A DNA stretch of 64,000 bases from Macrostomum lignano (GCA_002269645.1 NIVC01001221.1:1-64000); one strand, 5' to 3'; positions 11,977-57,269 are shown, numbered from the stretch's first letter. A program made the numbers and translations. Notes: generated by a model not told the origin, from the letters alone.

Positions 11977-12609
11977 TCACTGAGGCCTGTTATATCTCCG
12001 AGCGGAATGCCCGCTTTGTCCCCTTTTCCTGGCCTTGGGACTGGCGTCCCCGTCTGCAGTGGCCGCAGCGAACACGGAGCTGGCGGCCATCAAGTTCTCA
12101 ATGTACTGCCCGAGAATCCGATTCTCGCTGCTAAGTTTGATATTCTCCTCTTTAACAGTTTCAACTCGTTGGCTCAAATCGTCAAGCGTGGACTGCAGCT
12201 CAGCAATCTGGGTCACCAGGCGCAGTTTCTCCTCCCCTTCCGTTTCGCCGCCCTCCAGATGTCCGGCCGAGTCAGCATTGGAGCTGGTAGCGCCAGCTCC
12301 AGTGAGAGCCGATACCGATGAAGCTCCACCCGATGCGCCAGCAGCTTCCAGGGCTGCAGACGACGATGTGCCATATTCGGCAAATCTGCCGCTTTGAGAC
12401 GAGTAACGCAACGTCTCGGACCAATGCTGCATCCATTCGGGATTGGAGTTGGGCAGGGCTGAGCTACCAGCTGCTTCAATGGAAGATGTTGGCAGCAGTG
12501 CTGGCTGCTGTTGACTGCTCAAGTCCTGCTTGGCTGGCTGCTGAGAATCAGGACCTGATTCAGAGTCACTTTCCAATGCTATCACTGTCATGTTGTTTTC
12601 TGACATCAT
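11977..12609 (-). CDS. SCOC: Short coiled-coil protein (SCOC family; UNC-69/Slo1-like), 210 aa, single coding exon
   Basis: C-terminal [55 protein letters not shown] matches the SCOC coiled-coil signature, including the GQYIENLM motif. ATG at 12609 lies 29 nt after a good acceptor (tttgatttatctacag). Confidence 0.92.
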
Positions 12610-15132
12610 TTTCTTGCTTCTTTTTTACTGATAGACAGCTGTAGATAAATCAAAGCATTGAGTTAAGTTACATTTGACTTGAAATTGACATTAAAGGATT
12701 AGGTTTTTTGAGAATCAGAGAGCCAATTAGTGCAAAATTTAAAGTAGTATAATCATAATTTACTGCTATGGGAAATGAGACTTAATCACAAATTTAGACT
12801 GAGTGCTTGTCTACTCCTAAGCATTAGTTTTAGAATACTTGCAGGTAGGCTATTAGCCTATTAGGCAGAGGCATAGCCAGAAATTTTTCACTTTTTTTTA
12901 TAGTCAAAATAATTTAATTTATAAGTATGCCAAAGATAGCCAGGATGATAAAACTATTTTAGATATATAACTAATTATTTTATACACATTAAAAAGTACT
13001 ATATTAACCATACTTGACTATGCTATTCATAGAAATTCTTAAGTCTAAAAGATGGCAGTTTTCTCAAAAGAATTGTATCATATAGTCTAGAAAGTGGCCT
13101 TTGCCATTTAAAATTCTAGTACATAAGGGTCCCTATCATGTGGTATAAAAGTATACTCATACAACCTTAATACACACTAGAAGTCTGGTATAAAACTATT
13201 CATCTATGCAACTAGAATTGGGTAATATTTCCAAGTTGACAAAAGTCACCAAAGTGTTGGGTGACTTTATTGGCAATTGACAAAGTGACCAATGACTAGG
13301 TATCCTCATTTGCTATGTACAATAATTGTTATCAATGATGTTGTTTTAATTATTACCTTATTTTATCTAAAACAATCAAATTCAACATTTAACTTCACCA
13401 TGAGTACTGGATGTACAAAGGTAAGATGTTCTCATACAAATATTCTATGCAAATGCATTACCTATGCACATTCAACTCTAATCCTAGCCTAAATGCATTT
13501 ATGCCTTATGAATCTTGCATATTTATACATTATATGACTAAATATATGTCCACATAGGTCATTTATCCCATCAAAACACATAGTTGAATGTTGAGGACTG
13601 CTAATAGTCTCTAGAGTTGAGAATATTTGCAAGCACATAAGAAGGGACTTATTGGGGATCTATATGAAGGCCCCTACCTAAAGCATTATGTATGATTCAC
13701 ATATATCATACTATATTAGGTTATTTCAGCCTGTCATGCTTAATAATAATAGTTTTAAATCTAGATTTATACCCCACTATTGCAAAATCATCCTATACTA
13801 ACAATCCAAACTGTTAAATTGGAAGTCCTATGACTCCTATTAGAATCACAATTAAATTTGTTGTTTCCTTAAACTCTATATAATTTTTGCCAATTCTATA
13901 GTAGGCTACACTTTCCAACAGAAACAATTTGGCTAACCATATGCCTTATATTGCTTATATATTCACCTATTGCTTATATAGCACTGTTCTATAGCCCTAT
14001 AGGCTAGAGCTAGAACTTCATTATTTATAAATATTTATTTATTTAGGGCTTAGTATATATAAAAATGATATCCCTTGGTCTTGGGCTAGTTTATTAAGTG
14101 AATTTAGTGTAGATGTCTGGCGCAGTTAAGCCATTAGCCATGTACTGCAATAGGCCAGGATGTCACTTAGTTATAAATTAAAGAAGGTTATATTATAGAA
14201 CTATTTGAATATTTGTTACATTAGCTATAATTCATATTCACAATTTAAAATTTACAAGTGGAGGGTGGATGGGTATAAAAGGCAATTAGAGAGAACAAAA
14301 GTACAGTAAACAGACTAGGCAAGGTAAGGTAAGGTGTACAACCATGGCATAGTAGGCTACAAATTACAAAACGCACTGATGCACAAAGGTTAAAGCATTC
14401 CCTGCCCTTTGGTACATGATGCATAGCAATCATAAGACAAATAAGTTAAAAAAGATGATTAATGATAAAAGTAGACTACAGTTTAGCCAATACGAGTTAA
14501 TAATCCAAATATTTTTTGTTTGCTAATAAATAATAAATAATTTATCTTTGTTGTTGACTTTAGCGAATATTTTCTATGAAACTGCTGAACTTGAATCCGC
14601 GTAAGTTGAAATTTTTGCACGATAATATGTCTGTATAAGTAAAGCAATGCAAGATGCTAAGCTTTATATACTTCTAGTGCTAGTAAAATGAAGTGATGGT
14701 TTACGATTATTATTTCTTGTTATTTTTATTTTTTAGGATTATTAAATTGTTATAACTATAACGTGTAAATTTCGAAATTTGTCGCGTAAGTTTGAATCTG
14801 AAATTTCTTAGAAGCAGACACAGCTGTCTGCAGGCTGTCAACATAAGTATAGTAGAATGTAGATGCTGCAGTAATATAACTTTAGAAGTAGCAATCTCTA
14901 CTATCGCGTTCTATTTTGCCAGTTTCTGTTTATGATCACCTTATATTTTGCTCATTGTCGTGCAAAAATTGTGTGTTCAAAACTGGCTGATAAAAAATAT
15001 GCAAAATTGAAACTGCAGTTTGTTGGATGATGCTTATAATATAGAAATGAATCTAATTCAGTTTGTAGCATAAAAGCCAAATATGTTCATTTTTGAGCCT
15101 TTTTAATATTCTCTATATTGCAGAATATGAAT

Positions 15133-15589
15133 TAAACACATTACAAACATACCAACAGTTCCAATTCCAATATACAAGCAAAGCCTAGCTAGCATACATC
15201 TACTATCATATGTAAATCTTGTATATAAATAGGAAACACAAGTCACAACTTTGTGTTAAAAAATGGTATAAAATTCTTAATAACAAAACTATAGCTTATG
15301 CCTGGTTAACATTTAGCCATAGGCATACAAAAGCAGAGGCCAACTCCTCTATTGGAGGAGAAAGGGGAAGAACTCCTATCACTGGAATCCATCAGCTGAA
15401 TCCTATGACTATGACCCGAATCCTATCATCCAAGTCCTCTTTAAAATCCATTAAAATCCTCTTCGTGAAACAGAAATCCATAAAAATCCTTTCTTTCAAA
15501 CAGGTTTGTTATTTATAAAAACTCTCAGTCAAACAGATATTCATAAAAATTCTCTCAGTGAAATAGCTATATTCATCAAAATTTTCTCT
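15133..15589 (+). repeat. Left copy of a 457-bp direct duplication flanking the non-LTR element
   Basis: Apparently identical to 17257-17713 on manual comparison (offset 2124). The ORF track shows the same 99-aa translation at 15219 and 17343. Confidence 0.93.
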
Positions 15590-17171
15590 CGTTTTCACCA
15601 AGCGCCGTAAGTGGGAGATGAAAAACCTCACTGTCTATGGCAGAAACATCCCCTTCAAGAAGGAGGTCAAATACCTCGGTGTGACGCTAACGCATGACCT
15701 GCGCTGGACGAAGCACCTTGATAACGTCATCGGTCGGGCAAAACGCTGCTTTGCCCAGCTGCGCAGAGCCATCGGGCCGACTTGGGGCCTCTCGCCTAGA
15801 ACGGTCCGTTGGATTTATACCGGCATCATCCGGCCCAGTATCACATACGCGAGTCTCATCTGGACTAGCGTGCTGGAGCAGAAGGCCGCCCGTCAGCGGC
15901 TGTACCAGCTTCAGGGCAGCATTTGCCGTGCCATCACAGGTGCGTACCCGTCCACCCCTTACGAGGGGCTGAACACTATCCTTAACCTACCTCCGCTTCA
16001 CCTATTTATTAGGGCGGAGGCTATGAAGACTGCCTCCCGGCTTATCAGAGATAAAACGTTAAATAACGCGCCCTCTGGCTTTATGCCAATGAAAACATTA
16101 ATCCCGCATATGGACTTTGTCCGCCGCGACCTTAACAACATCCACATGGACCTGGGCAATGTGGATAGTCGACCTCCCGCCCTCAACATCAGGAGGGGCT
16201 TCAAGACCGCCATCCCTGGCCGAGACAACATTCCGCTGGATGTCGGTGTGAACCGGCGCAGCCAGGGCATTCACTGCTTCACCGACGGCTCGCTGTTCAA
16301 CGGCCGCACTGGAGCGGGTATTGCCATTTTCCACGAGGGTAAGATGCTTCTCCAGGAAAGTCTGCACCTCGGTGAGAACACCTCAGTTTTCCAAGCTGAA
16401 ATTTGCGCCATCGAGCAGTGTGCCCAGCAACTGTTTCAGGCGAACATTAATAATTTTGACATTAATTTCTACACTGATAGCCAAGCTGCTATTAAGGCCT
16501 TAACCACTGAGAATATCTCCGCTGCTACAGTATCTCAATGCCACCGCAGTGTGCAATCTCTCTCAGTCCTTAACAGGATTAGAATTATCTGGACACCTGG
16601 TCACAGCAACATCCTGGGCAACGAGCTCGCAGACTCTCTCGCCAAGGAGGGCAGCAACCCAGACGGCAACCACCGTCTGATGAGGCTACCCACTCCCAGG
16701 TCGCAAGTCACCCGCCATATCAACAGGTGGCTCCATCAGCAGCACCAGCTCCACTGGAACAGCTGCACCGAGTACAGGCAGAGCCGCTCTGCCATGCCTA
16801 ACCTGAACAGGAAAGTCTCTGATTATCTGATTTCGCTTAACAGAACCGACCTCAGGGAGATGTGCATGGTCCTAACCGGCCACGGATTCTTCCAGAGACA
16901 TATATCGTTGCAAACCGGTTGCCCTCCCACCTGCCCCTTCTGTGGCATAGGAGAGGAGACCGCGGAGCATCACGTCACCTTCTGCCCTTACTTCAACAAG
17001 GCGCGGCACAAATACCTCGGCCACCCCCAGCGGATGGACGAGCTGACCACCGCGGACAATATCCGAGACCTCCGCGCCTTCGTCCGGGACTCCGGCCGGA
17101 TGAGGGTCGCCGATGCCTCCACTGCGGACCTGCCGACTACTGGCGGGGACTGGGCGCACCCCCAAGGCTAA
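15588..17171 (+). CDS. C-terminal part of retrotransposon ORF2 (RT end, thumb, RNase H, C-x2-C-x8-H-x4-C finger), uninterrupted
   Basis: Motifs [72 protein letters not shown] (D-E-D-D catalytic residues intact) and [18 protein letters not shown]. Confidence 0.93.
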
Positions 17172-17256
17172 TCCTTGTGCTCTTTTACCTTGGGGTTGCG
17201 ATAGGGGCCTCGCGGCCTATTCGCGGCGCCTGCGCCCCCCGTCAGTAGTAAGTAAG
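15590..17256 (+). mobile_element. 5'-truncated non-LTR retrotransposon with RNase H (R1/LOA/I-group; most like LOA/Lian type)
   Basis: Begins mid-RT (VFTKRRK...EVKYLGVTL...W..H), then thumb, RNase H and a CCHC finger. A short 3' UTR and a (TAAG)n-like tail follow at 17245-17259. Confidence 0.93.
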
Positions 17257-17713
17257 TAAACACATTACAAACATACCAACAGTTCCAATTCCAATATACA
17301 AGCAAAGCCTAGCTAGCATACATCTACTATCATATGTAAATCTTGTATATAAATAGGAAACACAAGTCACAACTTTGTGTTAAAAAATGGTATAAAATTC
17401 TTAATAACAAAACTATAGCTTATGCCTGGTTAACATTTAGCCATAGGCATACAAAAGCAGAGGCCAACTCCTCTATTGGAGGAGAAAGGGGAAGAACTCC
17501 TATCACTGGAATCCATCAGCTGAATCCTATGACTATGACCCGAATCCTATCATCCAAGTCCTCTTTAAAATCCATTAAAATCCTCTTCGTGAAACAGAAA
17601 TCCATAAAAATCCTTTCTTTCAAACAGGTTTGTTATTTATAAAAACTCTCAGTCAAACAGATATTCATAAAAATTCTCTCAGTGAAATAGCTATATTCAT
17701 CAAAATTTTCTCT
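17257..17713 (+). repeat. Right copy of the 457-bp duplication
   Basis: Starts directly at the element's tail and continues into the 30-bp minisatellite. Confidence 0.93.
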
Positions 17714-18070
17714 GTGAAACAAAAATCTATGAAAATCCTTTCCATGAAACAGAAATCCATCAAAATCCTCTCTGTGCAATAGAAAGCCCTTAAATTCCTC
17801 TCTGCAAAGCAGAACTCTATCAAAATCCTCTCTGTGAAACAGAACTCTATCAAAATCCTCTCCATGAAATAGAACTCCATCAAAATCCTCTCCGTGAAAC
17901 AGAACTCCATCAAAATCCTCTCTGTGAAACAGAACTCCATCAAAATCCTTTCCATGAAATAGAACTCTATCAAAATCCTCTCTATGAAATAGAAATCCAT
18001 CAAAATCCTCTCTGTGAAATAGAACTCCATCAAAATCCTCTCTATAAAATCAATATTCATCAAAATTCAC
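17665..18070. repeat. 30-bp minisatellite (CATCAAAATCCTCTCTGTGAAACAGAACTC)
   Basis: Tandem units are visible, with a 10-aa periodicity in ORF 17665-18063. Confidence 0.9.
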
Positions 18071-19670
18071 TCTGTTTAATGAATGTCTATCAATATCTCC
18101 TTCAAGCAAAAATCTATTAATTTAATCAACAGTAGTCTATTAAATTGGAGTGTATTATAAAAACACTTTTTATTTGTTTGTCTGGCTTTAATAAATGCAA
18201 GAAAAGGATTCACTGGTTAGGGAGGCACAATGCTACCTATTAAAAGGTGCCAATAATAAAAAATTGAACCAATTAATTGCAAAATCAATTTTTCAGTCAG
18301 TTAGTATCAGTCTCAGTTAAAGTTAACAAAATGATTGCGCAATCTAAATCAACGTTCAAATACATAGCAGCAATTAGAAGTTGAAGCCCCCAAATGTATA
18401 GATTGCATCTTGCAAAAATGAGTACAATCTTTGCAGAAAGTTGAAAGTATGGAAATTGTTTTTTGAATGCTGTGCTTTTATTTTTTATACTTAAGCAAGC
18501 AACTTATATCAGCATTGAAAGATTTTTCTAGCAATAAGTCTTCTCTTAAAGTTCAAAACTCGAGGAATAGTTTGCATTTGAAATTTCCCAGTTTAAAGCA
18601 TTGGATTTTTAGTGTACATTCACTTTTCACTGCCTGCTATAGTGAGAGGCTCGCAAGTTTATGCATTAAATTTCAGTGTCCACCAGTTAGCAAGGGTCCA
18701 AGTATACACACGCAGCCACTTAGAATGCCCCTATCCCCCACTGGGAAAGAAAATACACTTCTGAGATAGGAAAAATTTGTGGCGCAATCACTCAAAATTG
18801 ATAGAAATTTTCAGTTCAGATGAGAAAAAGTGGCCAAAGAAGGTTAAGAAAACAGTTTTCTGCTTTTTTAACAGACTTAGTTTTAAAAATTTCAACATTA
18901 AAATAGCCTATATGTTGTGTAGGAAAATTCTGCATTGATATATATAAGTTTTGCATTTGAGTTGGCAGCCATCTAGGAGGAGATACGCATTAAACCCGGC
19001 TGGTCAATTGATCCACTCAGCTCCATTGGTTTTTAAAGTTTTATTTTTGACTAGCATATATACGAGTATATATTTTAGTTGATACACTTTATTAGCATAT
19101 TTCATTTACATATATTTTCTTAGCTAGCCAAATGCTTTCTAGTATATGCAAAATGCAAAATCAATCTGCAATATGGGTTATACTTATAAAACAATAGATA
19201 AGATTAAGGATTGAATCATACCATAATAAATAATATGTCTAGAACATGTCTTTTTTCTTGCTTGCATAAAAATATCAGTATTTTTAAAGCTCACTAACTG
19301 ATAGATACTAGTTGAGTTTAATGACAATTATTTTTTACCCAAAAGGTTCAAGTTTGATGATTAAGTCTTTGATAGAAATATTAATTGGAAATTTTAGTGT
19401 TATTATATTTATACAAAATAATTATACCATTAATTTAAAGAAATAAATGGCTAATAGATGACTCATGACTCATTCCCTGACTATGCCACTGTTCAGGATA
19501 GCCTAGTCATACATATGAAAACTAGAAAATTTAATACCTAGCTGAGGAAATTTACATTTTACAGATAATGCTACTGATTAAAAAACTCCTTGTTTTCCTA
19601 CTACTGGTAGACTTTCTCAACAGTAGTATATGTACTAGCGATTGCAGATCCAGCTAAAGACAGGGCAGTG

Positions 19671-22600
19671 ATGAATTTGTCAAAAAGCGGCAGTCAGCAG
19701 GCTCTGGCGCCTGCCGAGCGGTACGAGACCTGCCCGATGTGCAGCACCTGCGTGGTGGAGAGCCGCCTCATCTGCCAGGCCTGCGTTCGTATGGGGAACT
19801 TTACTGCAATTCGAGATGATGTCACCTTTGCCCAGTTGCAGGTGAGCAGATGTGGGCTCGGGCTCTTAGGGTACATTGGGACTCCCAATGTAAATCCCCA
19901 GTTGATGGGCCACCAGCCTCCCAGAGTGTCAGTTGCCGGTGCAGACTCCCAGATCCTCAGTTGCCGGGCCAGGCTCCCAGATCCTCAGTTGCTAGGCCAG
20001 CCTCCCAGAGTGTCAGTTGCCGGGGCAGGCTCCCAGATCCTCAGTTGCCGGGCCAGGCTCCCAGATCCTCAGTTGCTAGGCCAGCCTCCCAGAGTGTCAG
20101 TTGCCGGGGCAGGCTCCCAGATCCTCAGTTGCCGGGCCAGGCTCCCAGATCCTCAGTTGCTGGGCCAGCCTCCCAGAGTGTCAGTTGCCGGTGCAGGCTC
20201 CCAGATCCTCAGTTGCCGGGCCAGGCTCCCAGACCCTCAGTTGCTGGGCCAGCCTCCCAGAGTGTCAGTTGCCGGGGCAGGCTCCCAGATCCTCAGTTGC
20301 CGGGCCAGGCTCCCAGACCCTCAGTTGCTGGGCCAGCCTCCCTGAGTGTCAGTTGCCGGTGCAGGCTCCCAGATCCTCAGTTGCCGGGCCAGGCTCCCAG
20401 ACCCTCAGTTGCTGGGCCAGCCTCCCAGAGTGTCAGTTGCCGGGGCAGGCTCCCAGATCCTCAGTTGCCGGGCCAGGCTCCCAGACCCTCAGTTGCTGGG
20501 CCAGCCTCCCTGAGTGTCAGTTGCCGGGCCAGGCTCCCAGATCCTCAGTTGCTGGGCCAGCCTCCCAGATCCTCAGTTGCCGGGCTAGGCTCCCAGATCC
20601 TCAGTTGCCGGGCCAGGCTCCCAGACCCTCAGTTGCTGGGCCAGCCTCCCTGAGTGTCAGTTGCCGGTGCAGGCTCCCAGATCCTCAGTTGCCGGGCCAG
20701 GCTCCCAGATCCTCAGTTGCTGGGCCAGCCTCCCAGAGTGTCAGTTGCTGGGCCAGGCTCCTAGATCCTCAGTTGCTGGGCCAGCCTCCCAGATCCTCAG
20801 TTGCCGGGCCAGCCTCCCTAACCAGCACTGAGGCCTCGCACTGCCCCGCCTCCCGGTCCCGCAGGCCCTGCAAAGCGAGCTGATCTCACAGAAAGCCAAT
20901 CTCGAGTCGCAGACGGAGGCGGTCGCCAACCCTTCGTCGTCACCGTCTGCCAGCTCCGCCCTGTCGCGCCGCTGCGAGAGCCGCCTCCGCTTGAAGCAGC
21001 TTCGGCGCGCCCTGTCCGACGCACGCGAGGCCGTCGGCGCCGAGCGCTCGCGTCGCTCCGCAGCGCGCCAGGCGTGCGCGGCGCTGAGCCGAGAAGTGGA
21101 GGCCTACAGGCGGAAGACGGCAGATCTCACAGCCGGTCTAAACAGCCTTCGCGATCGCTACAATGCTGGGCGGGCGCGAGCCGAGCGCGCCAGACATGGC
21201 GCTGCTAAAAAGGCGCGCAGTGTGTGCCGATTGATTGCGACTGAGGTGAGGCCTTGTAGCTGTAGCTTGAGATTCTCATTCAATTCTCATAACCCCGTCT
21301 CATGAGATTCTCGTCACCCAGTCTTATGAGATTCTCATCACTCAGTCTTATGAGATTCTTATCACTCAGTCTCATGAGATTCTCGTCACCCAGTCTCATG
21401 AGATTCTCATCACAGTCTCATGAAATTCTCATCACTCAGTCTCATGAGATTCTCATAACTCAGTCTCATGAGATTCTCATCATCCAGTCTCATGAGATTC
21501 TCATCACCCTGCCTCATGAGATTCTCATCATCCAGTCTCATGAGATTTTCATCATCCAGTCTCATGAGATTTTTATCATCCAGTCTCATGAGATTCTCAT
21601 CACCCTGCCTCATGAGATTCTCATCATCCAGTCTCATGAGATTCTCATCACCCTGTCTCATGAGATTTTCATCACTCAGTCTCATGATAAGGTTATCATC
21701 GCCCAGTCTCATGAGATTCTCATCACCCAGTCTCATGATGAGATTCTCATCACCCAGTCTCATGATGAGATTATCATCACCCAGTCTCATGATGAGATTC
21801 TCATCACTCAGTCTCATGAGATTCTCATCACCCAGTCTCATGGTGAGATTATCATCACCCAGTCTCATGATGAGATTGTCATCACTCAGTCTTATGAAGA
21901 GATTATCATCACCCAGTCTCATAATGAGATTATCATCACCCCGTCTCATGAGATTCTCATCACTCAGTCTCATTTAATTCTTATAACCCAGTCTCATGAT
22001 GAGATTATCATCACCCAGTCTCATTTAATTCTTATAACCCAGTCTCATGATGAGATTATCATCACCCAGTCTCATGATGAGATTATCATCACCCAGTCTC
22101 ATGATGAGATTATCATCACCCAGTCTCATGATGAGATTCTCATCACCCAGTCTCATGATGAGATTCTCATCACCCAGTCTCATGAGATTCCCAGTCTGCT
22201 CATTCTCAATCTCATCTCACTAAACGTCCGTGCTCCCATCCCGGCAGGTGTACAACCTTCACGAAACGGAGCGCAGCATCGTGCATCACCGTCTGCGCCT
22301 GCCGCCTCTGTCCAGCTTCCCCAGCCGCAGCTTGGAACCGGCTCCCGAGACCTACCAGGCCCTCCTAGCCGCCAGCTCCCTGCTGCAGGCGCTGACCGCC
22401 TGTCTGGCCACCTGGACCCCGTTCCAGCCGGTGCCGATCACCTTCATGCGCAGCCCCTGTCCCGCGACTCCGTGAACGCTCAGCACGCCAAACTGCAGGT
22501 GGCTCTGCACTCTCTGTGCAACCGCTACCATCACTGCCTGGCTCTGTACGCGCCTGGCGACCCACTGCTGACCCTGTGCCGGCTGCTTGAGTCTTCTCAA

Positions 22601-29400: not shown

Positions 29401-32400
29401 CAGTGGCGGAGGAACTGGGAGCTCGTTGGTCTGGTACAGACTCTTCTTCTCTCTGTCTTCCCTCCATACCGTAATCTGCCTCTCCCTCTCTCCTTCACCC
29501 TCCCTCCCTTACCCTCTCTCCCCCTCTCCCTCTCTCCCTCCCTCCCATACCCTCTCTCCCTCTCTCCCTCTCTCCCTCTCTCCCTCTCTCCCTCTCTCCC
29601 TCTCTCCCTCCCTCCCTTACCCTCCCTCCCTTACCCTCTCTCCCTCTCTCCCTCTCCCCCTCCCTCCCTTACCCTCTCTCCCTCTCTCCCTCACCCTCTC
29701 TCCCTCCCTCCCTTACCCTCTCTCCCTCTCTCCCTTACCCTCTCTCCATCACCCTCTCTCCCTCACCCTCTCTCGCCTCACCCTCTCTCCACCAAACTCT
29801 CTCCCCTCACTCTCTCTCTCAACCAACCTCTCTCCTCCACACTCTTTCCCTCATCCTCTCTCTTGCACCCTCTCTCCCTCTCTCTCTCTCTTCACCCTCT
29901 CTTGCCTCACCTTCTCTCCCTCACCCTCCCTTCCTCTCTCAACCCTCTCAGTCCCACCCTCCCTCCCCACGCAATCTCCGTTCCTGTCTCTTAAACCGAA
30001 TGCGCAGAAGCTAAGTCCAAAGCCCCACTCACGGCAGGAAAACCTCCTGGCAGTTGTTGATGATCTGCTTGCCGATCATGATCACGGCCAGCTGCTGGGC
30101 CAGCTCGATCAGGCAGCCGCCGTTGTCGCATTCCTCGTTGCGCAGGCCAAAGAACTTAATGTACCTTCCCGGGTAACCGGTGAACCTGCACAGGTACGAT
30201 AGTATGGATTAGCTTTATGCTTTACTACTCTGATAATTAAAGTCATGATTGAACAAAATCCGAACTCACTTTCCCTTGAAGAATGCGATGTAAAAAATTG
30301 ACGAGTAGAAATTGACAAACTGGAAGATGAACACCTTCAGGATGAGCTGGTCCTCGAACTCCGTCTGCGTGCGGTGCATCTCTGCGAGCGAGGCCAGTAC
30401 ACTTATGATGCTAAAAATAGCTTAGGATTCCCTGTACACTATGATTCTAAAAATAGCTCTGGGATTCTCTGTACACTGGTTTTAAAAATAGCTCAGGGAT
30501 TCTCTGTACACTCTGGTTCTAAAAATAGCTAAGGGATTTCCTATACACTCGGATTCTAAAAATAGCTGAGAGATTTCCTGTACTCTCTGATTCTAAAAAT
30601 AGCTCAGTGATTCTCGGTACATTGATTCTAAAATAGCTCAGGGATTCTCTGTACACTGATTCTAAAAATAGCTCAAGGATTCCCTGTACACTATGATTCT
30701 AAAAATAGCTCAGGGACTCTTTTGGCATAGCTCTTTAGACTATAAACCCATTTTACATAAAATTGTCTATAAAACCACTACAACTAGATAAATAGCGCAA
30801 GTATTTCCCTCGGCTACCGCTTACCCCACTGAGTCAGTTTGTAGGCCAGCTTCTCGTACACCTTGCCCAGACTCATGATGAGGATCAGATTGACAATGGC
30901 GGCGGAACCGCTCGCCACCGTGGATGCTTGCGATCGAAGCAGCGGATTTTGAAATAGCGGAATAGCGATCAGCACCCGGTAGATAATGACGGCGATTATG
31001 AATATTACCACGATTACCATCTGGGGAGATTGTAGTCAGGAGTTGCTTTATACAATAAATTATTTTTGGAAGAAAAACTTCGTTCTATATTTTTTCTTTT
31101 TTCTTCTTCTTTTCTTTTTTTCTTCTTGTTTTAAATCTTTTCGGGAGAATCCCTTCGGGAGAATCCCTTCGGGAGAATCCCTTCGGGAGAATCCCTTCGG
31201 GAGAATCCCTTCGGGAGAATCCCTTCGGGAGAATCCCTTCGGGAGAATCACTTCGGGAGAATCCCTTCGGGAGAATCCCTTCGGGAGAATCCCTTCGGGA
31301 GAATCCCTTCGGGAGAATCCCTTCGGGAGAATCCCTTCGGGAGAATCCCTTCGGGAGAATCCCTTCGGGAGAATCCCTTCGGGAGAATACCTTCGGGAGA
31401 ATACCTTCGGGAGAATCCCTTCGGGAGAATCCCTTCAACCCTCTCGGGGTTGAACCCTTCAACCCTCTCGGGAGAATCCCTTCGGGAGAATTCCTTCGGG
31501 AGAATCCCATCGGGAGAATTCCTTCGAGGAAAATTCCTTCGGGAGAATCCCTTCGGGAGAATCCCTTCGGGAGAATCCCTTCGGAGAATCCCTTCGGGAG
31601 AATCCCTTCGGAGAATCCCTTCGGGAGAATCCCTTCGGGAGAATCCCTTCGGGAGAATCCCTTCGGGAGAATCCCTTCGGGAGAATCCCTTCGGGAGAAT
31701 CCCTTCGGGAGAATCCCTTCGGGAGAATCCCTTCGGGAGAATCCCTTCGGGAGAATTCCTTCGAGGAAAATTCCTTCGGGAGAATCCCTTCGGGAGAATC
31801 CCTTCGGGAGAATCCCTTCGGGAGAATCCCTTCGGGAGAATCCCTTCGGGAGAATCCCTTCGGGAGAATCCCTTCGGGAGAATCCCTTCGGGAGAATCCC
31901 TTCGGGAGAATCCCTTCGGGAGAATCCCTTCGGAGAATCCCTTCGGGAGAATCCCTTCGGGAGAATCCCTTCGGGAGAATCCCTTCGGGATAATCCCTTC
32001 GGGAGAATCCCTTCGGGAGAATTCCTTCGAGGAAAATTCCTTCGGGAGAATCCCTTCGGGAGAATCCCTTCGAGAGAATCCCTTCGGGTGAATCCCTTCG
32101 GGAGAATCCCTTCGGGTGAATCCCTTCGGGAGAATCCCTTCGGGAGAATCCCTTCGGGAGAATCCCTTCGGGAGAATCCCTTCGGGAGAATCCCTTCGGG
32201 AGAATCCCTTCGGGAGAATCCCTTCGGGAGAATCCCTTCGGGAGAATCCCTTCGGGAGAATCCCTTCGGGAGAATCCCTTCGGGAGAATCCCTTCGGGAG
32301 AATCCCTTCGGGAGAATCCCTTCGGGAGAATCCCTTCGGGAGAATCCCTTCGGGAGAATCCCTTCGGGAGAATCCCTTCGGGAGAATCCCTTCGGGAGAA

Positions 32401-35400
32401 TCCCTTCGGGAGATTCCATAAGGGAGATTCCATAAGGGAGATTCCATAAGGGAGATTCCATAAGGGAGATTCCATAAGGGAGATTCCATAAGGGAGATTC
32501 CATAAGGGAGATTCCATAAGGGAGATTCCATAAGGGAGATTCCATAAGGGAGATTCCATAAGGGAGATTCCATAAGGGAGATTCCATAAGGGAGATTCCA
32601 TAAGGGAGATTCCATAAGGGAGATTCCATAAGGGAGATTCCATAAGGGAGATTCCATAAGGGAGATTCCATAAGGGAGATTCCATAAGGGAGATTCCATA
32701 AGGGAGATTCCATAAGGGAGATTCCATAAGGGAGATTCCATAAGGGAGATTCCATAAGGGAGATTCCATAAGGGAGATTCCATAAGGGAGATTCCATAAG
32801 GGAGATTCCATAAGGGAGATTCCATAAGGGAGATTCCATAAGGGAGATTCCATAAGGGAGATTCCATAAGGGAGATTCCATAAGGGAGATTCCATAAGGG
32901 AGAATCCCTTCGGGAGAACCACTTTCGGAGAAACTCAATTACTCGTAGAAGACAAAGAAATCGCTCAAGAAGATTGACTCCTATAAAAATTATCACAGAA
33001 AATTGCTGAGAGAGAATCACCGGTGAGCGAAGCTAATGAGAGATAAATAATGATAGAGAATCATAGAGAATGGCTCATATAGAATCGCTCAGTGATCCTA
33101 TAATAGACAATCGCTCATAAGTAATGGATCATAAAAATGCTCATGAAACATTGCCCATCAAGAATTGCTCATACACCATAGCTCATAGAGAATCGCTAAT
33201 AGAGAATCGCTCATGGAGAATCGCTCATAGAGAGTCGCTCATAGACTATATTTCATAGAGAATCGCTCATAGACTATTGCTCATAGAGAATCGCTCATAG
33301 AGAATCGCTCATAGACTATTGCCCATAGAGAATCGATTATAGCGAATCGCTCAAAGAGAATCGCTCATAAAGAATCACTCATAAGGAATCGCTCATAAGG
33401 AATCGCTCATAAGGAATCGCTCATAAGGAATCGCTCAGAGATAAAAAAGGCTCCTCACGGGGATGCCTAATGGAGAAATAGATAATATAATTTCACTTAC
33501 CATAATGATAATACACGTGATGCCGGTGATGATTCTAGGAATGCGCAGGCTATTAGGAAAGTGCGGCTCAAGATTCCCCGTGACGGGATTTCGCTCATAC
33601 GAGGAGCAAAGCGCTGAGTACTCCGGCCTCGGTCGCTCTTCGTCCTCTTCGAAGTCCATGACGTCCCAGTGGTGTGCCAGCGAGGCATTTTTGCGTTTCC
33701 AGTTTTCCAGGAAAGTTACAGCTAGAAAAAAAGAGTAGCTTTATAACTCAGCCAAATTAGTCTACTTTAAGTAATCTGTTGGATAAAAGTGTGTATATTC
33801 AGTTTTTTCTATAGTTACATTCAAAATAAGTGCATCTCACCCCAGAAGGCCACAAACACTGAGTAGAACACGGTGCCGGGGTGGTCGAACAGATAGGAGA
33901 TCCGCATGAACATGCAGATGTCGCTCAGGTACCAGTACTTGCAGCCAATGGCCTCGTCGCACAGTGGGCACATCTTGTAAGTCATGTTGCTATCGCAGAC
34001 CTCGTTACTGACAGTTGGATTAGGGTTAGGCTTCAGTTTAGGGTTTAGGTTAGGCTTCAATTTAGGGTTTAGGTTAGGCTTCAATTTAGGGTTTAGGTTA
34101 GGCTTCAATTTAGGGTTTAGGTTAGGGTTTAGGTCAGGGTTTAGGTCAGGGTTTATGTTAGGGTTTAGGTTAGGGTTTAGGTTAGGGCTTAGGGTTAGCG
34201 TTTGGCTGAAGCAACAAGCTTATCTGCTTTTCTGGGCCATTTCTATGAAATGTTAGGAGTCTTTACACGCATATAAAATCTTCTTTATGCAACAAAGCAT
34301 AATTTGCATTTATGTATAGATTGAGTAGTCTATATCAATAACGTATATAGTTATCAAAAGCTGAGTTTCGCTCAATTTCGCTTCGATGAGAAGAGTCAAC
34401 AGAAGAGTCAGAAAATTGAGATCATGAATTATTTATGAGGGTCTGAGACCTACTTCCCGACTTACCATATATGAATCCCGAGGGAGAAGAAGGCACTCGA
34501 AGAATATGGAAGGCTCTTAAGAAGAGAAATTCGCATTGAGTGAACTTTTAAGGCAACTTTGATCCCGCAGTTTCCAAAGCGATAGCCTAAAATACTATTT
34601 AATATTTTCTTTAAATCTAAATAATCCTGACCCGACCGGGATTCGAACCTCGGCTGCAGAGTTGTCAAACGGGCACGCTTATCCCCTAAGCCAAAAACGT
34701 GCTCTGTACTCACCCTGGCACGTTGGCCTTGAACGTGAAGCAGCCGTAGAGGAACACGATGATGCCAACAATGCTAGCTGGTAGGAGCCAGGCTGTGTAC
34801 AGACCTGAAACATCGAAACCGTATTAAACGTACACATTTAGTGATCGACGAGAAAATCTAAACAAACTTAGATTTTCTATTTGTTATTATAATCAATAGT
34901 ATACTAGTATATCCGATTTCTTACCAAGCCAGGCAAAGTACAGTCCGATCTTCTCTCCGTAGTACTCTCTAATGTGATCCAACGGCTGGTATTTGTACCA
35001 CAGGCCCCATTTGGCCCAGTAGGCGTTTAGAATTTGGCGAGCGTTCAAGTCTTCGGGCTGGTAGTCCTTCGGAAGCTCGTAGGGACCCTTAGTTTTGATT
35101 TAATTTGAGTTATTTTAATTAGTTAAAGTTCTCTAATGAGTATTTATCATATGTCAGTCATTAAAGTGAGTGTACACTGGCAACAGGCCAGTACTCGTAG
35201 TGTTTCAATGAGTTTTTACTGGGATCGAGAATCATCTGGCTCTTAAGTCGAAACTTCGATCTCTTGGATCTCAGGGAGTGAGGTGGCGGTAGAAAGAGAC
35301 AACATCCAATGAAAAGAGAGCAGGGAGTGAGGTGGCGGTAGAAAGAGACAACAACCAATAAAAAGAGGGCAGGGAGTGAGGTGGCGGTAGAGAGAGACAA

Positions 35401-38400: not shown

Positions 38401-41400
38401 AACCTCTTGGCCTAAAAAACCTTTGCACTTAAACTTTAATCCATACGATCTGCTTGCAACCTTGACTTTTGTTTGCTTTTAATTATTTCAGCTTTCTACA
38501 CAGGAAAGTTCCGGAGAGAGAAGCATAGATCTACTCAGTGAGGTCTGCTCTCAACTAGAGCTCAAGTGCTTTAAAAACCTGAAAACTGTTTGGATAAATA
38601 AGCCAGCCTCACCTCCTCCATCTGGACTCCGACTTTCCTCAGGTTGCCTTCAAACCTGCGACGATAAACAGCCTTGCGCTGCTCCCAGGGGTCCTCGGGG
38701 TCGTCGTCAGCTCGTTGCAGGTCCTCCTCCCACACGATCACAAAGTCTGCGAGAGGTTAAAGAGAAGACTGAAGAGAATTGGCTGCAATTTAGCAAATCA
38801 ATTTTCTTTGACTATATAAGATAACCAAGTCTGGTCTCTGTGGTGCAAACAGAAAGGTAGTGCCAACGGCCTCATTAAGATAATTGGTGCGACTTGTAAA
38901 CTTTGGCAAAAAACAATATAGAAGCATTAGAGAATGGAAAAATTAGTTGAAAGTTGTATCCGGCCGTGTATTCCTCTAAACAAATATAACCCGAATATAT
39001 CAACCAGGAACATGTGCTCAGGGGTCTGACTGCTAGCTGTTGTCACTTTGATTTGAGTGCAGTGGCCAAAGATCTTTGCAAATATAAACATAGCCCCGAA
39101 ACCACAAACCTTAAACCATAAACCCTAAACTCTAATTTATAAACCCTGACCTCAAAGCCTAAAAATAAATCCTAAACGCTAAACCCTTAATAATGACGAT
39201 AACCCTAACCTTAAACCCTAAACCCTAACCTCTAAACCAGACACTAAAATCTTACTCTAAACCCTAAAACCTAACCACTAGACCCCAAACACGAACCCCT
39301 AAACAATAAACCCTAAACCCTAACCCTGAACCCTAACCCATAAAAACCCTAAACGCTAAGCCCTAAACCCTAAACCCTAACCCAAAAAACTCAGAACCCT
39401 AAGCCCTAAACCCTAAACCCTAAGCCCTAAACCCTAAACCCTAACCCATAAAACCCTAAACCCTAACCCATAAAACCCTAAACCCTAAGCCCTAAACAAT
39501 AAACCCTAACCCATAAAAACCCTAAACGCTAAGCCCTAAACCCTAAACCCTAACCCAAAAAACTCAGAACCCTAAGCCCTAAACCCTAAACCCTAAGCCC
39601 TAAACCCTAAACCCTAACCCATAAAACCCTAAACCCTAACCCATAAAACCCCAAACCCTAAGCCCTAAACCCTAAACCCTAACCCATAAAACCCTAAACC
39701 CTAAGCCCTAAACCCTAAGCCCTAACCCAAAAAATCCTAAACCCTAAGCCCTAAACCCTAAACCCTAACCCATAAAACCCTAAACCCTAAACCCTAACCC
39801 ATAAAACCCTAAACCCTAAACCCTAACCCATAAAACCCTAAACCCTAAACCCTAACCCATAAAACCCTAAACCCTAAACCCTAACCCATAAAACCCAAAA
39901 CCCTAAACCCTAAGCCATAAAAACCCTAAACCCTAAGCCTTGAACCCTAAACCCTAACCCATAAAACCCTAAACCCTAAGCCCTAAACCCTAAACCCTAA
40001 CCCATAAAACCCTAAACCCTAAGCCCTAAACCCTAAGCCCTAACCCAAAAAATCCTAAACCCTAAGCCCTAAACCCTAAACCCTAACCCATAAAACCCTA
40101 AACCCTAAACCCTAACCCATAAAACCCTAAACCCTAAACCCTAACCCATAAAACCCTAAACCCTAAACCCTAACCCATAAAACCCAAAACCCAAAACCCT
40201 AAGCCATGAAAACCCTAAACCCTAAGCCCTAAACCCTAAACCCTAACCCATAAAACCCTAAACCCTAACTCATAAAACCCTAAACCCTAACCCATAAAAC
40301 CCTAAACCCTAACCCATAAAACCCTAAACCCTAAACCCTAACCCATAAAACCCTAAACCCTAAACCCTAATCCATAAAACCCTAAACCCTAAACCCTAAC
40401 CCATAAAACCCTAAACCCTAAACCCTAACCCATAAAACCCTAAACCCTAAACCCTAATCCATAAAACCCTAAACCCTAAACCCTAACCCATAAAACCCTA
40501 AACCCTAAACCCTAAACCCTAACCCATAAAACCCTAAACCCTAACCCATAAAACCCTAAACCCAAACCCGGCACTCACCAACTCGTCGAACACCGTCGGC
40601 AAAGTAGCAGCCGGACTCGAGCCGGCGCTGGGACCGAGACTGGGCCAGCAAGCCGAGGCCGCGATCTCCCACGCCGTCGTCGCAGGCCTCCGGCTCGTCT
40701 GGGCGGCTCTGAGATTTGAGCAGTGTTTCTTTAAAGAAACTGTTTTTAAGATTAATCGTGAAGAAAGTAGTTTCAGCAACAGGAAACAGAAAGCATAGAG
40801 AAATATAGCACTTATCAAATCTAATTTTAGATAAAGTCTCATGCTCCAATCTCATATAGTCTATCTATACCTACAAAATCTGAATCTCAGAGTAGATTTA
40901 CCTACAAATCTAATCTCATATAGTAGATCTATCTTACAGATCTAATCTCATATAGTAGATCTATCTTACAGATCTAATCGCATACAGTAGATATACCTTA
41001 CAGATCTAATCTCATATAGTAGATCTATCTTACAGATCTAATCGCATATAGTAGATCTATCTTACAGATCTAATCGCATATAGTAGATATATCTTACAGA
41101 TCTAATCTCATATAGTAGATCTATCTTACAGATCTAATCGCATATAGTAGACCCACCTTACAGATCTAATCTCATATAGTAAATCTATCTTACAGATCTA
41201 ATCTCATTTAGTAGATCTATTTTACAGATCTAGTCTCATATAGTAGATCTATCTTACAGATCTCATCTCATATAGTAGACCCACCTTACAGATCTAATTT
41301 CATTTAGTAGATCTATTTTACAGATCTAGTCTCATATAGTCTATCTATAATACAATATATAATATACAAGATCTGAATCTCAGAGTAGATTTACCTACAA

Positions 41401-44425: not shown

Positions 44426-45474
44426 AATTTGGCGCTAACGCCTAAGAAGCATAAAGTTATAATTCAACATTGTCAACTTACCTGCCAAATTGAGTCCATA
44501 GGTACAACTCGTTAACTAAAGTTTCGAGTCGCTAACACGCCCGCTTACAAAGCATCTCAGCTTAGTTACCGCATAACTGTGCATCTTTGCGCGTGGGAAC
44601 TCAAAACCTACATGCACAGACAGCTCACGCTGTGGTGCTCATAAACAGTAGCCAACTGATAAAGCGTGCCAATTTGTCCGGGTCGGACTCGACTGTCTTC
44701 CTGTCTGCGCCTGGGCGAAAGACGATTAAAATAAGGATGCATGCATAAATAAGCAGGGAATGCTAGGGGATGGGGAGATGGAAAGAGGAGCTGGGGGGGG
44801 GAGAGATTCGGAATCAAGGAGAGTGAGAACAGCGCAGCATCCAATAGCGTTCGCTGCTCATTAACAGGTCCAGTTCTTTGCTTCTTTACTCCGGCCTCAG
44901 CCACTCTCTGCACTTCTTCAACTTTCTCTCTACACCCCATCCCCCACCCCTAGGGGGGGGGGGGGAGCGGCTCCGCTAGTCCAATATACTAAATATGTCT
45001 ATAAACTCTCTTATATGGTAGCCGTTGTGTTCAGTATGCTGGCGCCATTACTGTACAGAGTTTCGGCTCGTATGATGAGAAGTTCTCTCTTTATCGTTAA
45101 GTGCTAGTTTTACAATCATACTTGTTCGATTAGTTGCTACATTTACTTCATTATTCAATTTGGCCTATCCTTGTTGTCCATCCGTTCAGATCCATCCATG
45201 CACAATTGCAAGCAGAAATGAACAAAAGCAGAAGAAGCAGATTGAATTTCCATGTATTTGTCACGTGTAAACAGACTAAACTAAACGATATTGCTGCTGG
45301 ATTGGGGCTTTCGTCGGATCGTTATGTGAAACCATGTCCATCATCTGCACTTAAATTTTCTGGGAGGTCAACGATAGGTGGGGCAGCTCAAAAGTAACGC
45401 TTAAAGTAAAGTAGCTCTTGAACCTAAGGTGGCCTGGGTTTGATTCCGTGCGTGCATGGTAACTAGCTAAATAA

Positions 45475-45564
45475 TACTAACTAACTGACTAACTAACTAA
45501 ATGGCAAACTATCTGATAACGAACTAACTAGCTAGCCAACTAACTAACTAACTAACTAATAAAA

Positions 45565-45602
<38 letters not shown>

Positions 45603-45640
45603 GCTAGCTAGCTAACTAACTAGCTAGCTAACTAACTAAT

Positions 45641-45687
<47 letters not shown>

Positions 45688-45852
45688 TAAACGAACGAAC
45701 TAACTAACTAACTAACTAACTAATAAAATAACTAACTAACTAACTAATAAAATAACTAACTAACTAACTAACTAACAAACTGACTAATAAACTAACTAAC
45801 TAACTAACTAACTAGCTAGCTAGCTAACTAACTAGCTAGCTAACTAACTAAT

Positions 45853-45899
<47 letters not shown>

Positions 45900-45909
45900 T
45901 AAACGAACG

Positions 45910-45950
<41 letters not shown>

Positions 45951-45988
45951 GCTAGCTAGCTAACTAACTAGCTAGCTAACTAACTAAT

Positions 45989-46039
<51 letters not shown>

Positions 46040-46140
46040 TAAACGAACGAACTAACTAACTAACTAACTAACTAATAAAATAACTAACTAACTAACTAAT
46101 AAAATAACTAACTAACTAACTAACTAACAAACTGACTAAT

Positions 46141-46175
<35 letters not shown>

Positions 46176-46176
46176 T

Positions 46177-46207
<31 letters not shown>

Positions 46208-46228
46208 TAAACTAACTAACTAACTAAT

Positions 46229-46267
<39 letters not shown>

Positions 46268-46268
46268 T

Positions 46269-46315
<47 letters not shown>

Positions 46316-46416
46316 TAAACGAACGAACTAACTAACTAACTAACTAACTAATAAAATAACTAACTAACTAACTAATAAAATAACTAACTAACTAACTAAC
46401 TAACAAACTGACTAAT

Positions 46417-46451
<35 letters not shown>

Positions 46452-46452
46452 T

Positions 46453-46483
<31 letters not shown>

Positions 46484-46504
46484 TAAACTAACTAACTAAC
46501 TAAT

Positions 46505-46547
<43 letters not shown>

Positions 46548-46600
46548 TAAAATAACTAACTAACTAACTAATAAAATAACTAACTAACAAACTGACTAAT

Positions 46601-46639
<39 letters not shown>

Positions 46640-46664
46640 TAAACTAACTAACTAACTAACTAAT

Positions 46665-46695
<31 letters not shown>

Positions 46696-46696
46696 T

Positions 46697-46727
<31 letters not shown>

Positions 46728-46865
46728 TAAACTAACTAACTAACTAACTAACTAGCCAACTAACTAACTAACTAACTAATAAACTAACTAACTAACTAGC
46801 TAGCCAACTAACTAACTAACTAACTAATAAACTAACTAACTGACGGACCAACTGACTAACTAACT
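45475..46865. repeat. (CTAA)n microsatellite with TAAA/CTAG/CGAA interruptions
   Basis: Directly visible. Confidence 0.96.
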
Positions 46866-53000: not shown

Positions 53001-55375
53001 GAGACTGAGAATTGGGGTGAGATTGAGAATTAGATTTGGGGTGAGATTAAGACTGAGAATCGGGGTGAGATTGAGACGGAAAATCGGGGTGAGATTGAGA
53101 CGGAGAATCGGGGTGAGATTGAGACGGAAAATCGGGGTGAGATTGAGACGGAGAATCGGGGTGAGATTGAGACGGAAAATCGGGGTGAGATTGTGACGGA
53201 AAATCGGGGTGAGATTGAGACGGAGAATCGGGGTGAGATTGAGACTGAGACTAGGGGCGAGATTGAGACTGAGACTAGGGGCGAGATTGAGACTGAGACT
53301 AGGGGTGAGATTGAGACTGAGACTAGCGGTGCGATTGAGACTGAGAATTGCGGTGAGATTGAGAATTAGAATTGGGGTGCGATTGAGACTGAGAATTGGG
53401 GTGCGATTGAGACTGAGAATTGGGGTGAGATTGAGAATTAGATTTGGGGTGAGATTGAGAATTAGATTTGGGGTGAGATTGAGACTGAGAATCGGGGTGA
53501 GATTGAGACGGAAAATCGGGGTGAGATTGAGACGGAGAATCGGGGTGAGATTGAGACGGAAAATCGGGGTGAGATTGAGACGGAGAATCGGGGTTAGATT
53601 GAGACGGAAAATCGGGGTGAGATTGTGACGGAAAATCGGGTGAGATTGAGACGGAGAATCGGGTGAGATTGAGACGGAAAATCGGGGTGAGATTGAGACG
53701 AAGAATCGGGGTGAGATTGAGACGGAAAATCGGGGTGAGATTGAGACGGAGAATCGGGGTGAGATTGAGACGGAAAATCGGGGGAGATTGTGACGGAAAA
53801 TCGGGGTGAGATTGAGACGGAGAATCGGGGTGAGATTGAGACTGAGACTAGGGGTGCGATTGTGACGGAAAATCGGGGTGAGATTGAGACGGAGAATCGG
53901 GGTGAGATTGAGACTGAGACTAGGGGTGAGATTGAGACTGAGACTAGGGGTGCGATTGAGACAGGGAATTGCGGTGGGATTGAGAATTAGAATTGGGGTG
54001 AGATTAAGAATTAGAATTGGGGTGAGATTGAGACTGAGACTAGGGGTGAGATTAAGACGGAAAATCGGGGTGAGATTGAGACTGAGAATCGTGGTGAGAT
54101 TGAGACGGAAAATCGGGGTGAGATTGAGACGGAAAATCGGGGTGAGATTGAGACGGAGAATCGGGGTGAGATTGAGATGGAAAATCGGGTGAGATTGAGA
54201 CTGAGAATTGCGGTGAGATTGAGAATTAGAATTGGGGTGCGATTGAGACTGAGAATTGGGGTGCGATTGAGACTGAGAATTGGGGTGAGATTGAGAATTA
54301 GATTTGGGGTGAGATTGAGAATTAGATTTGGGGTGAGATTGAGACTGAGAATCGGGGTGAGATTGAGACGGAAAATCGGGGTGAGATTGAGACGGAGAAT
54401 CGGGGTGAGATTGAGACGGAAAATCGGGGTGAGATTGTGACGGAAAATCGGGGTGAGATTGAGACGGAGAATCGGGGTGAGATTGAGACGGAGAATCGGG
54501 GTGAGATTGAGACGGAAAATCGGGGTGAGATTGAGACGGAGAATCGGGGTGAGATTGAGACGGAAAATCGGGGTGAGATTGTGACGGAAAATCGGGGTGA
54601 GATTGAGACGGAGAATCGGGGTGAGATTGAGACTGAGACTAGGGGTGAGATTGAGACTGAGACTAGGGGTGCGATTGAGACAGGGAATTGCGGTGGGATT
54701 GAGAATTAGAATTGGGGTGAGATTAAGAATTAGAATTGGGGTGAGATTGAGACTGAGACTAGGGGTGAGATTAAGACGGAAAATCGGGGTGAGATTGAGA
54801 CTGAGAATCGTGGTGAGATTGAGACGGAAAATCGGGGTGAGATTGAGACGGAAAATCGGGGTGAGATTGAGACGGAGAATCGGGGTGAGATTGAGATGGA
54901 AAATCGGGTGAGATTGAGACTGAGAATTGCGGTGAGATTGAGAATTAGAATTGGGGTGCGATTGAGACTGAGAATTGGGGTGCGATTGAGACTGAGAATT
55001 GGGGTGAGATTGAGAATTAGATTTGGGGTGAGATTGAGAATTAGATTTGGGGTGAGATTGAGACTGAGAATCGGGGTGAGATTGAGACGGAAAATCGGGG
55101 TGAGATTGAGACGGAGAATCGGGGTGAGATTGAGACGGAAAATCGGGGTGAGATTGTGACGGAAAATCGGGGTGAGATTGAGACGGAGAATCGGGGTGAG
55201 ATTGAGACGGAGAATCGGGGTGAGATTGAGACGGAAAATCGGGGTGAGATTGAGACGGAGAATCGGGGTGAGATTGAGACGGAAAATCGGGGTGAGATTG
55301 TGACGGAAAATCGGGGTGAGATTGAGACTGAGATTTGGGGTGAGATTAAGACTAAGATTTGGGGTGAGACTGAGG
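50090..55375. repeat. 24-bp minisatellite (GAGATTGAGACGGAAAATCGGGGT) with ~719-bp higher-order blocks
   Basis: 8-aa periodicity. Matching ORF translations recur at offsets 719 (53878/54597, 54177/54896) and 1438 (51447/52885). Confidence 0.96.
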
Positions 55376-57251: not shown

Positions 57252-57269
57252 CTGCGGTGCGGGGTGAGG

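Follow-up and report, generated by a model that had tools for sequence, protein, structure and literature searches.

The second half of LINE (non-LTR retrotransposon) integration, in which the other target strand is broken, is still poorly understood as regards both the site and the mechanism of that break; the usual distance between the two breaks is about 5–20 bp. Much longer target-site duplications (TSDs) have nevertheless been described in several systems. For human L1 in HeLa cells, up to 10% of events carry a TSD of more than 100 bp, and in nucleotide excision repair (NER)-deficient cells the median rises to 1.5 kb with a maximum of 5.3 kb, long TSDs that have been ascribed to a distant and possibly unrelated second nick (PMC5223499). 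A 1228-bp TSD, termed an 'L-TSD', was recovered in 1 of 25 insertions of the zebrafish element ZfL2-2 in DT40 cells (PMC2666801), and more than half of the de novo insertions of Dualen-4b_cRei in Chlamydomonas reinhardtii are accompanied by duplications of more than 50 bp, with a median of 900 bp (PMC9977147). Finally, tandem duplications in tumours have been found to carry L1 sequences where the duplicated segments meet (PCAWG; PMC7058536). The first-pass annotation of the locus described here had taken the 126-bp TSD of R9 elements as the exceptional upper benchmark, a yardstick that is outdated given that the TSDs of L1, ZfL2-2 and Dualen-4b_cRei reach hundreds of base pairs to kilobases.

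The locus lies in the first 64 kb of contig NIVC01001221.1 (hereafter the window, meaning the whole stretch of DNA analysed) of the Macrostomum lignano assembly Mlig_3_7 (GCA_002269645.1). Mlig_3_7 is a Pilon-polished Canu assembly of PacBio reads from an aneuploid, neopolyploid and repeat-rich genome, in which REAPR scored only 64% of bases as error-free (PMC5730564), and the structure reported below is read from this one Canu and Pilon assembly. It consists of two direct copies of a host segment, R, on either side of a LINE fragment, spans 2.6 kb in total and is free of Ns and scaffold gaps. The repeat portion comprises the following features:

15133..15589, unstranded: left copy of R (TSD), 457 bp, 100% identical to 17257–17713, with a single counterpart in each of two paralogous loci, L003 (7491–7037) and L004 (6940–6459)
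15133–15443, unstranded: unique host part of the left R, 311 bp
15444–15589, unstranded: minisatellite part of the left R, the first ~5 units of a 30-bp array, ~146 bp
17257..17713, unstranded: right copy of R (TSD), running uninterrupted into the remaining minisatellite
17568..18075, unstranded: 30-bp minisatellite of ~16 units (TRF; repeat family D2), holding the putative second break

The initial description of two identical 457-bp direct repeats, the right one continuing into a 30-bp minisatellite, proved accurate to the base: window positions 15133–15589 and 17257–17713 match at 457 of 457 positions at an offset of 2124, the identity ends exactly at the repeat limits on both sides, and TRF delimits the array at 17568–18075; beyond R, only the right-hand side carries the array further, as far as about 18075. 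An exact match of this length is far beyond chance. The 1667-bp insert between the copies (15590–17256) differs sharply in composition from R (56% versus 33% GC), and neither R nor the insert has a further copy elsewhere in the 64-kb window; blastn and tblastn searches likewise returned no LINE copy besides the insert in the window, in L003 or in L004. A derivation of R from a SINE, a tRNA or another noncoding RNA was considered and rejected, as no tRNA gene or Rfam match is present in the window. R also contains a 99-aa ORF with a TTG start, which is absent from the protein collection.

The insert itself resolves into the following parts:

15590..17256, plus strand: 5′-truncated LINE fragment corresponding to the 3′ third of the element, 1667 bp, 56% GC, matching LINE proteins of M. 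lignano at 99% identity and missing at L003 and L004
15591..17171, plus strand: open ORF2 remnant (RT end (thumb), RNase H, C-terminal Cys/His domain), 526 codons plus a stop at 17169–17171
16269..16655, plus strand: RNase H domain, remnant residues 227–355 (Pfam PF00075, E = 4e-13; TDGS, QAE, TDSQ and NELAD motifs)
17172..17256, plus strand: 3′ UTR (77 bp) and tail (TAAG)2 at 17249–17256, the next TAA (17257–17259) being common to the target

The ORF2 remnant begins in the middle of the RT, is uninterrupted by stop codons across its 526 codons and retains the D/E/D/D catalytic motifs of RNase H, which are readable in the translation. At its other extremity the element ends in ...CAGTAG(TAAG)2, followed directly by the TAA that forms the first three nucleotides of the right R. 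A 733-aa M. lignano protein (P0002), in which Pfam places RVT_1 at residues 187–439 in addition to RNase H, aligns with the remnant over its residues 407–731 at about 99% identity (99.4% from residue 407 on), and because its sequence continues upstream of the insert start, the truncation point of the present copy must lie within the C-terminal RT portion. The best protein matches of the remnant are dozens of M. lignano gene models at 92–100% identity, and the 93–100% protein identity among many of these models indicates, at the level of predicted proteins, a young multi-copy family in this species. The insert is thus the young, 5′-truncated, RNase H-bearing non-LTR element that had been proposed, as borne out by its 99% identity to M. 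lignano proteins, its PF00075 domain and its mid-RT start.

The APE domain is missing from the truncated copy and is found in members of the family. Three proteins (P0142, P0170 and P0173) share 99% identity with the N-terminal RT part and bear the UniRef name Endo/exonuclease/phosphatase, with PF03372 detected on P0170 and P0173. A 52% identical relative on a 5.2-kb metagenome contig (L001) displays the order ORF1, APE, RT and RNase H, where the APE corresponds to an Exo_endo_phos_2 ORF upstream of the RT, and its tail, too, is a short simple repeat, (ATG)n(AGTG)n. The closer relatives (P0007, P0008 and P0016; 49–63% identity) come only from metagenome contigs; more distant are insect RT and RNase H elements (30–36% identity), where the best named match is the 'Lian-aa1 retrotransposon protein' (34%); a protein of Folsomia automatically named 'R1' matches at 38%. 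Homology to the insect Lian-like elements reaches residue ~466 of the remnant, and a Pfam search of the C-terminal 526 aa for a second endonuclease returned RNase_H only, although a divergent RLE could escape Pfam. By best matches and domain content rather than by phylogeny, we provisionally classify the LINE as APE-type, RNase H-bearing and I/LOA-like.

Two uninserted counterparts of the locus were found through the 90% cluster of a neighbouring SCOC-like protein, a cluster with two further members from Mlig_3_7:

11977–12609, minus strand: SCOC-like (DUF2205) single-exon gene, neighbour of the locus (GenBank record at NIVC01001221.1)
L003 (NIVC01000278.1, Mlig_3_7): left flank A at 95.9% identity (2.4% substitutions), one R with 4 substitutions in the unique 311 bp, right flank B contiguous, LINE absent
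L004 (NIVC01000085.1, Mlig_3_7): left flank A at 94.6% identity, one R with 9 substitutions in the unique 311 bp, right flank B contiguous, LINE absent

At both loci flank A, a single R and flank B follow one another contiguously, and the LINE is absent. A single L003 segment (7037–7491) aligns to both copies of R in the window; the boundary between A and R is unbroken in both paralogues (...GAATATGAAT TAAACACATTAC...), with the target TAA intact; and across the boundary between R and B both carry the minisatellite on. The minisatellite part of R is more divergent between the paralogues than the unique part and includes indels. The presence of one R with both flanks and no LINE at L003 and L004 identifies R as host DNA, in agreement with its earlier characterization as host-like sequence. 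It follows from this comparison that R was single-copy before the event and that both the insertion and the duplication are derived in the window copy, whether they arose together or in succession. The two copies of R differ at 0 of 457 positions, compared with 1.3–3% substitutions between paralogues, which dates the insertion event after the paralogue split, with the caveat that Pilon polishing could have removed small differences between the copies. The empty sites are paralogues (1–3% substitutions plus indels) and as such are distinct from an empty allele.

Comparison of the filled and empty sites places the two putative target breaks as follows:

15130..15136, minus strand: candidate first-strand (bottom) nick, target ...GAATATGAAT/TAAACAC..., between 15132 and 15133 or, because of the shared TAA, as far as 15135/15136
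17711..17716, plus strand: candidate second-strand (top) break, ...TTTTCTCT/GTGAAAC..., within a minisatellite unit, where identity stops at 15589/17713

The tail of the LINE abuts the left edge of R with the TAA overlap and its 5′ end abuts the right edge, a geometry that had already been recognized as compatible with target-primed reverse transcription (TPRT). Because the TAA is common to tail and target, the length of the TSD is 454–457 bp. Microhomology at the 5′ junction amounts to at most 1 nt, as judged with P0002 supplying the sequence upstream of the truncation; a shared TTTTC near this junction was considered as the joint and rejected, as it was not used. Taken together, the junction sequences fit the arrangement predicted for TPRT if the second strand was broken 454–457 bp downstream of the first nick. 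The locus combines a LINE-type ORF2, an APE in the family, a complete and tailed 3′ end and a single-copy R at the uninserted paralogues, features that characterize a non-LTR element inserted by TPRT.

We therefore favour, with a probability of roughly 0.7, a single recent TPRT event of a young M. lignano LINE in which the second break happened to fall far from the first, leaving a sporadic long TSD. The first nick, made by the element's endonuclease, would have fallen in the bottom strand within the AT-rich sequence GAAT/TAAAC. The exposed ...TTA-3′ end could then have annealed to the terminal UAA of the (UAAG)n tail of the RNA and primed cDNA synthesis. Reverse transcription would then have halted, or the cDNA disengaged, in the RT-coding region, yielding the 5′ truncation, while the top strand would have been broken 454–457 bp downstream within the 30-bp minisatellite. 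The 3′ end at this break may have primed the second strand with 0–1 nt of microhomology, and filling of two 457-nt single-stranded stretches would have duplicated the host segment. While this order of events is an inference, the exact duplication, the nature of the LINE with its truncation and tail, the single-copy target with an intact TAA at both paralogous empty sites and the junction sequences are directly observed.

The second break falls in the fifth unit of the minisatellite, and structure formation by this array was entertained as a reason why the second break lay so far away. This candidate was rejected: single-stranded DNA folding of both strands around the break (17620–17810) revealed no hairpin potential beyond that of shuffled sequences (z = 0.39 and 0.61). 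The second-break and first-nick sites also share no convincing motif similarity. We consider that the distant break probably arose by chance or from a pre-existing nick or end, such as those of replication or repair, an origin also proposed for L1 insertions with long TSDs (PMC5223499), rather than by programmed cleavage, which would make the long TSD a sporadic outcome and not a rule of the family.

Two further insertions in the vicinity provide internal controls. A 516-bp MITE (TIR element) at window positions 8578–9093 is flanked by a 7-bp TSD (TTAGAAC) and is absent from L003, and a retroposon of ~907 bp with a simple-repeat tail in L004 (8341–7435) is flanked by a 12-bp TSD (TAAGTAAAGCAA), its empty site corresponding to window positions 14636–14647, ~490 bp from the LINE target. 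Both are unrelated to the LINE family and paralogue-specific, and they lie within the same ~20 kb; their ordinary TSDs argue against a general tendency of the locus to form long duplications around insertions.

The verdict of a sporadic event draws on one examined insertion of the family and on priors from other LINEs, and the same priors leave an unlikely place for the strongest competing account, according to which this LINE routinely breaks the second strand hundreds of base pairs away and so systematically duplicates host DNA. The single examined copy does carry a long TSD, and family-level long TSDs are documented in other LINE clades (PMC9977147). A single insertion, however, provides no positive evidence of a habit, the ORF2 C-terminus, Lian-like to residue ~466, yields no second endonuclease in Pfam, and long TSDs are a minority outcome in the APE-type LINEs studied so far (PMC5223499). 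Searches for further copies gave the following. The exact products of the window ORF, P0002 and P0003 gave no record, a 140-aa C-terminal query returned five candidates and no match, and an RT-part query retrieved no M. lignano protein from NCBI; the lack of other copies among GenBank proteins is explained by the exclusion of transcripts that overlap repeats from the annotation (PMC5730564). Ten gene models that fuse LINE and host parts are available as UniRef members only, without contigs, and an exact 24-mer from the 3′ UTR of the LINE found no match in JGI metagenome contigs.

Somewhat less probable still is an error of assembly, in which the true locus would hold one R and the second copy would stem from a chimeric read or from a mis-layout of filled and empty haplotypes or of paralogues. 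Such an artefact would be expected to yield two perfectly identical copies, and Mlig_3_7, built by Canu from noisy PacBio data on a genome that is aneuploid and highly repetitive, is reported to contain 872 within-contig FCD errors and 180–312 Mb of redundancy (PMC5730564). A 2.6-kb structure is, however, easily spanned by single PacBio reads, the junction between the end of R and the 5′ end of the LINE offers no shared sequence for an overlap assembler to mis-join, and both junctions resemble genuine TPRT junctions in sequence uninterrupted by Ns or gaps.

We find a two-step or TPRT-independent origin slightly less plausible again. Here the LINE would have landed without a TSD at the joint of an older tandem duplication of R, or a duplication made by repair or replication would have captured a LINE cDNA. 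The final sequence is formally compatible with either course, and the many tandem repeats of the region make it unstable; moreover, bridging of L1 cDNA to a distant break has been proposed for tumour tandem duplications (PMC7058536). Set against this, R is single at both paralogues, the older-tandem version demands a nucleotide-exact coincidence of insertion site and duplication joint, and the complete, tailed 3′ end with TAA pairing at an AT-rich site is a signature of endonuclease-initiated TPRT, while the cDNA-bridging version departs from a single TPRT event solely in where the second break comes from. Lastly, the idea that R is a component of the LINE, comparable to the terminal direct repeats or pseudo-LTRs of Penelope-like or DIRS-type elements, has only the flanking of a retroelement by direct repeats to recommend it and is refuted by the AT-rich, host-like character of R, its continuity with the flanking minisatellite and its presence once, between the same flanks and without the LINE, at L003 and L004.

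To our knowledge, very long TSDs whose empty site can be recovered have seldom been seen as clean natural cases, as opposed to cell-culture assays. The present locus offers a germline example in which both junctions are resolved to the nucleotide and uninserted sites exist at two paralogues, and it shows that a LINE can, in a single step, copy roughly 0.5 kb of the host's DNA. Were the long TSD a property of the family after all, family-level long TSDs would extend to an APE-only clade, the first such family beyond the RLE-type R9 and the dual-endonuclease Dualens, and the family would constitute a transposable element-driven source of sub-kilobase segmental duplications in the M. lignano genome.

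Among the systems outlined above, R9 of bdelloid rotifers is a non-LTR element whose TSD likewise far exceeds 20 bp (126 bp; cited in PMC9977147). It is, however, RLE-type and specific to 28S rDNA, and all its copies have the same 126-bp TSD, whereas the M. lignano TSD is 3.6 times longer and its target is an AT-rich intergenic site beside a minisatellite. Membership in R9 was rejected, as the window contains no Rfam rRNA match. Dualen-4b_cRei insertions resemble the present one in being flanked by duplications of hundreds of base pairs; there, long TSDs are a family-level trait tentatively ascribed to the dual RLE and APE, whereas the M. lignano LINE has an APE-type architecture only and is known from one insertion. 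Assignment to the Dualens was rejected as well, given that Pfam detects no second endonuclease and the region past RNase H is Lian-like. In architecture the closest counterparts are the insect Lian/LOA- and I-type LINEs, which share an ORF2 with APE, RT, RNase H and Cys/His domains, a short simple-repeat 3′ tail and 30–36% identity over nearly the whole 526-aa remnant.

With respect to the insertion event itself, ZfL2-2 provides a parallel in its short-repeat tail, microhomology-guided TPRT and very long TSD, but it belongs to the L2 clade and was followed in an experimental system in which the frequency of long TSDs was measured (1/25). Human L1 shares with the M. lignano LINE an APE-type endonuclease, a normal tailed 3′ end, 5′ truncation and TSDs from more than 100 bp to kilobases; it differs in clade, in the lack of RNase H in mammalian L1 and in its poly(A) tail, and its long-TSD events were recovered in cultured cells, whereas the M. 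lignano case is a fixed or assembled germline insertion. In the PCAWG tumours, direct tandem duplications likewise have an L1 at their joint, and the 3′ junction of this L1 shows an endonuclease motif; joining of the cDNA to a distant downstream 3′ end has been proposed as the mechanism (PMC7058536), but these duplications are somatic, of megabase scale and thought to involve the sister chromatid. Viewed as a single event, the M. lignano insertion occupies the instructive yet expected tail of the known TSD-length distribution, and it adds a natural case to an outcome of LINE integration that is rare but known from earlier work, extending it to a new host phylum and another LINE clade.

The short coiled-coil (DUF2205/SCOC-like) protein gene of the window is present in three single-exon copies that are at least 90% identical, each on a different contig of the assembly, which fits the redundancy and neopolyploidy reported for M. 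lignano. The surrounding loci, here the window and its paralogues L003 (NIVC01000278.1) and L004 (NIVC01000085.1), remain collinear across ~15-20 kb and differ by 1-3% substitutions together with many indels in their arrays.

Window 11977-12609 (-), SCOC-like gene
L003 10001-10645, SCOC-like gene
L004 10001-10654, SCOC-like gene
Window 8578-9093, MITE-like element, 516 bp (target-site duplication copies 8571-8577 and 9094-9100)
L004 7435-8341, retroposon, ~907 bp (target-site duplication at 8353-8342 and at 7434-7423; window 14636-14647 is the empty site)

The 516-bp element has (C)TAGGGATTGCAA...TTGCAATCCCTAG as its terminal inverted repeats and is flanked by a 7-bp target-site duplication, TTAGAAC. 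The paralogous L003 lacks it, with an empty site that reads ...GGTTAGAACTTAGAAA...; the insertion, a MITE-like DNA transposon, is restricted to the window copy. The retroposon, in turn, is found in L004 only, with a 12-bp target-site duplication of ordinary length (TAAGTAAAGCAA), and its empty site lies ~490 bp from the LINE target, the inferred first-strand nick near window 15133. It is GC-rich with a simple-repeat tail (ACAATAAGTAACAATA...), and neither blastn nor tblastn revealed any relation to the LINE.

Near-identical LINE pieces are also fused with domains of the host (thioredoxin, amino-acid transporter, MFS, SET and RRM) in many gene models of the older ML2 assembly, among them the UniRef proteins P0027, P0028, P0144, P0143, P0145 and P0023, which suggests that the LINE family of window 15590-17256 has given rise to widespread chimeric or mis-annotated M. 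lignano gene models.

A patchwork of mutually unrelated micro- and minisatellite arrays, with periods of 4-37 bp, covers about half of window 1-64000, for example:

9864-11891, 28-bp array
19913-20818, its inverted partner
31140-32918, array
45460-46865, array
50091-55374, array
57269-64000, array

The first two, 85-87% complementary and ~9 kb apart, enclose the SCOC-like gene together with the LINE locus. At window 39095-40569 there is an interstitial array of ~206 CCCTAAA heptamers (74% matches), or (TTTAGGG)n on the opposite strand, which is the plant-type telomere-like repeat; such a repeat is not expected in a flatworm.
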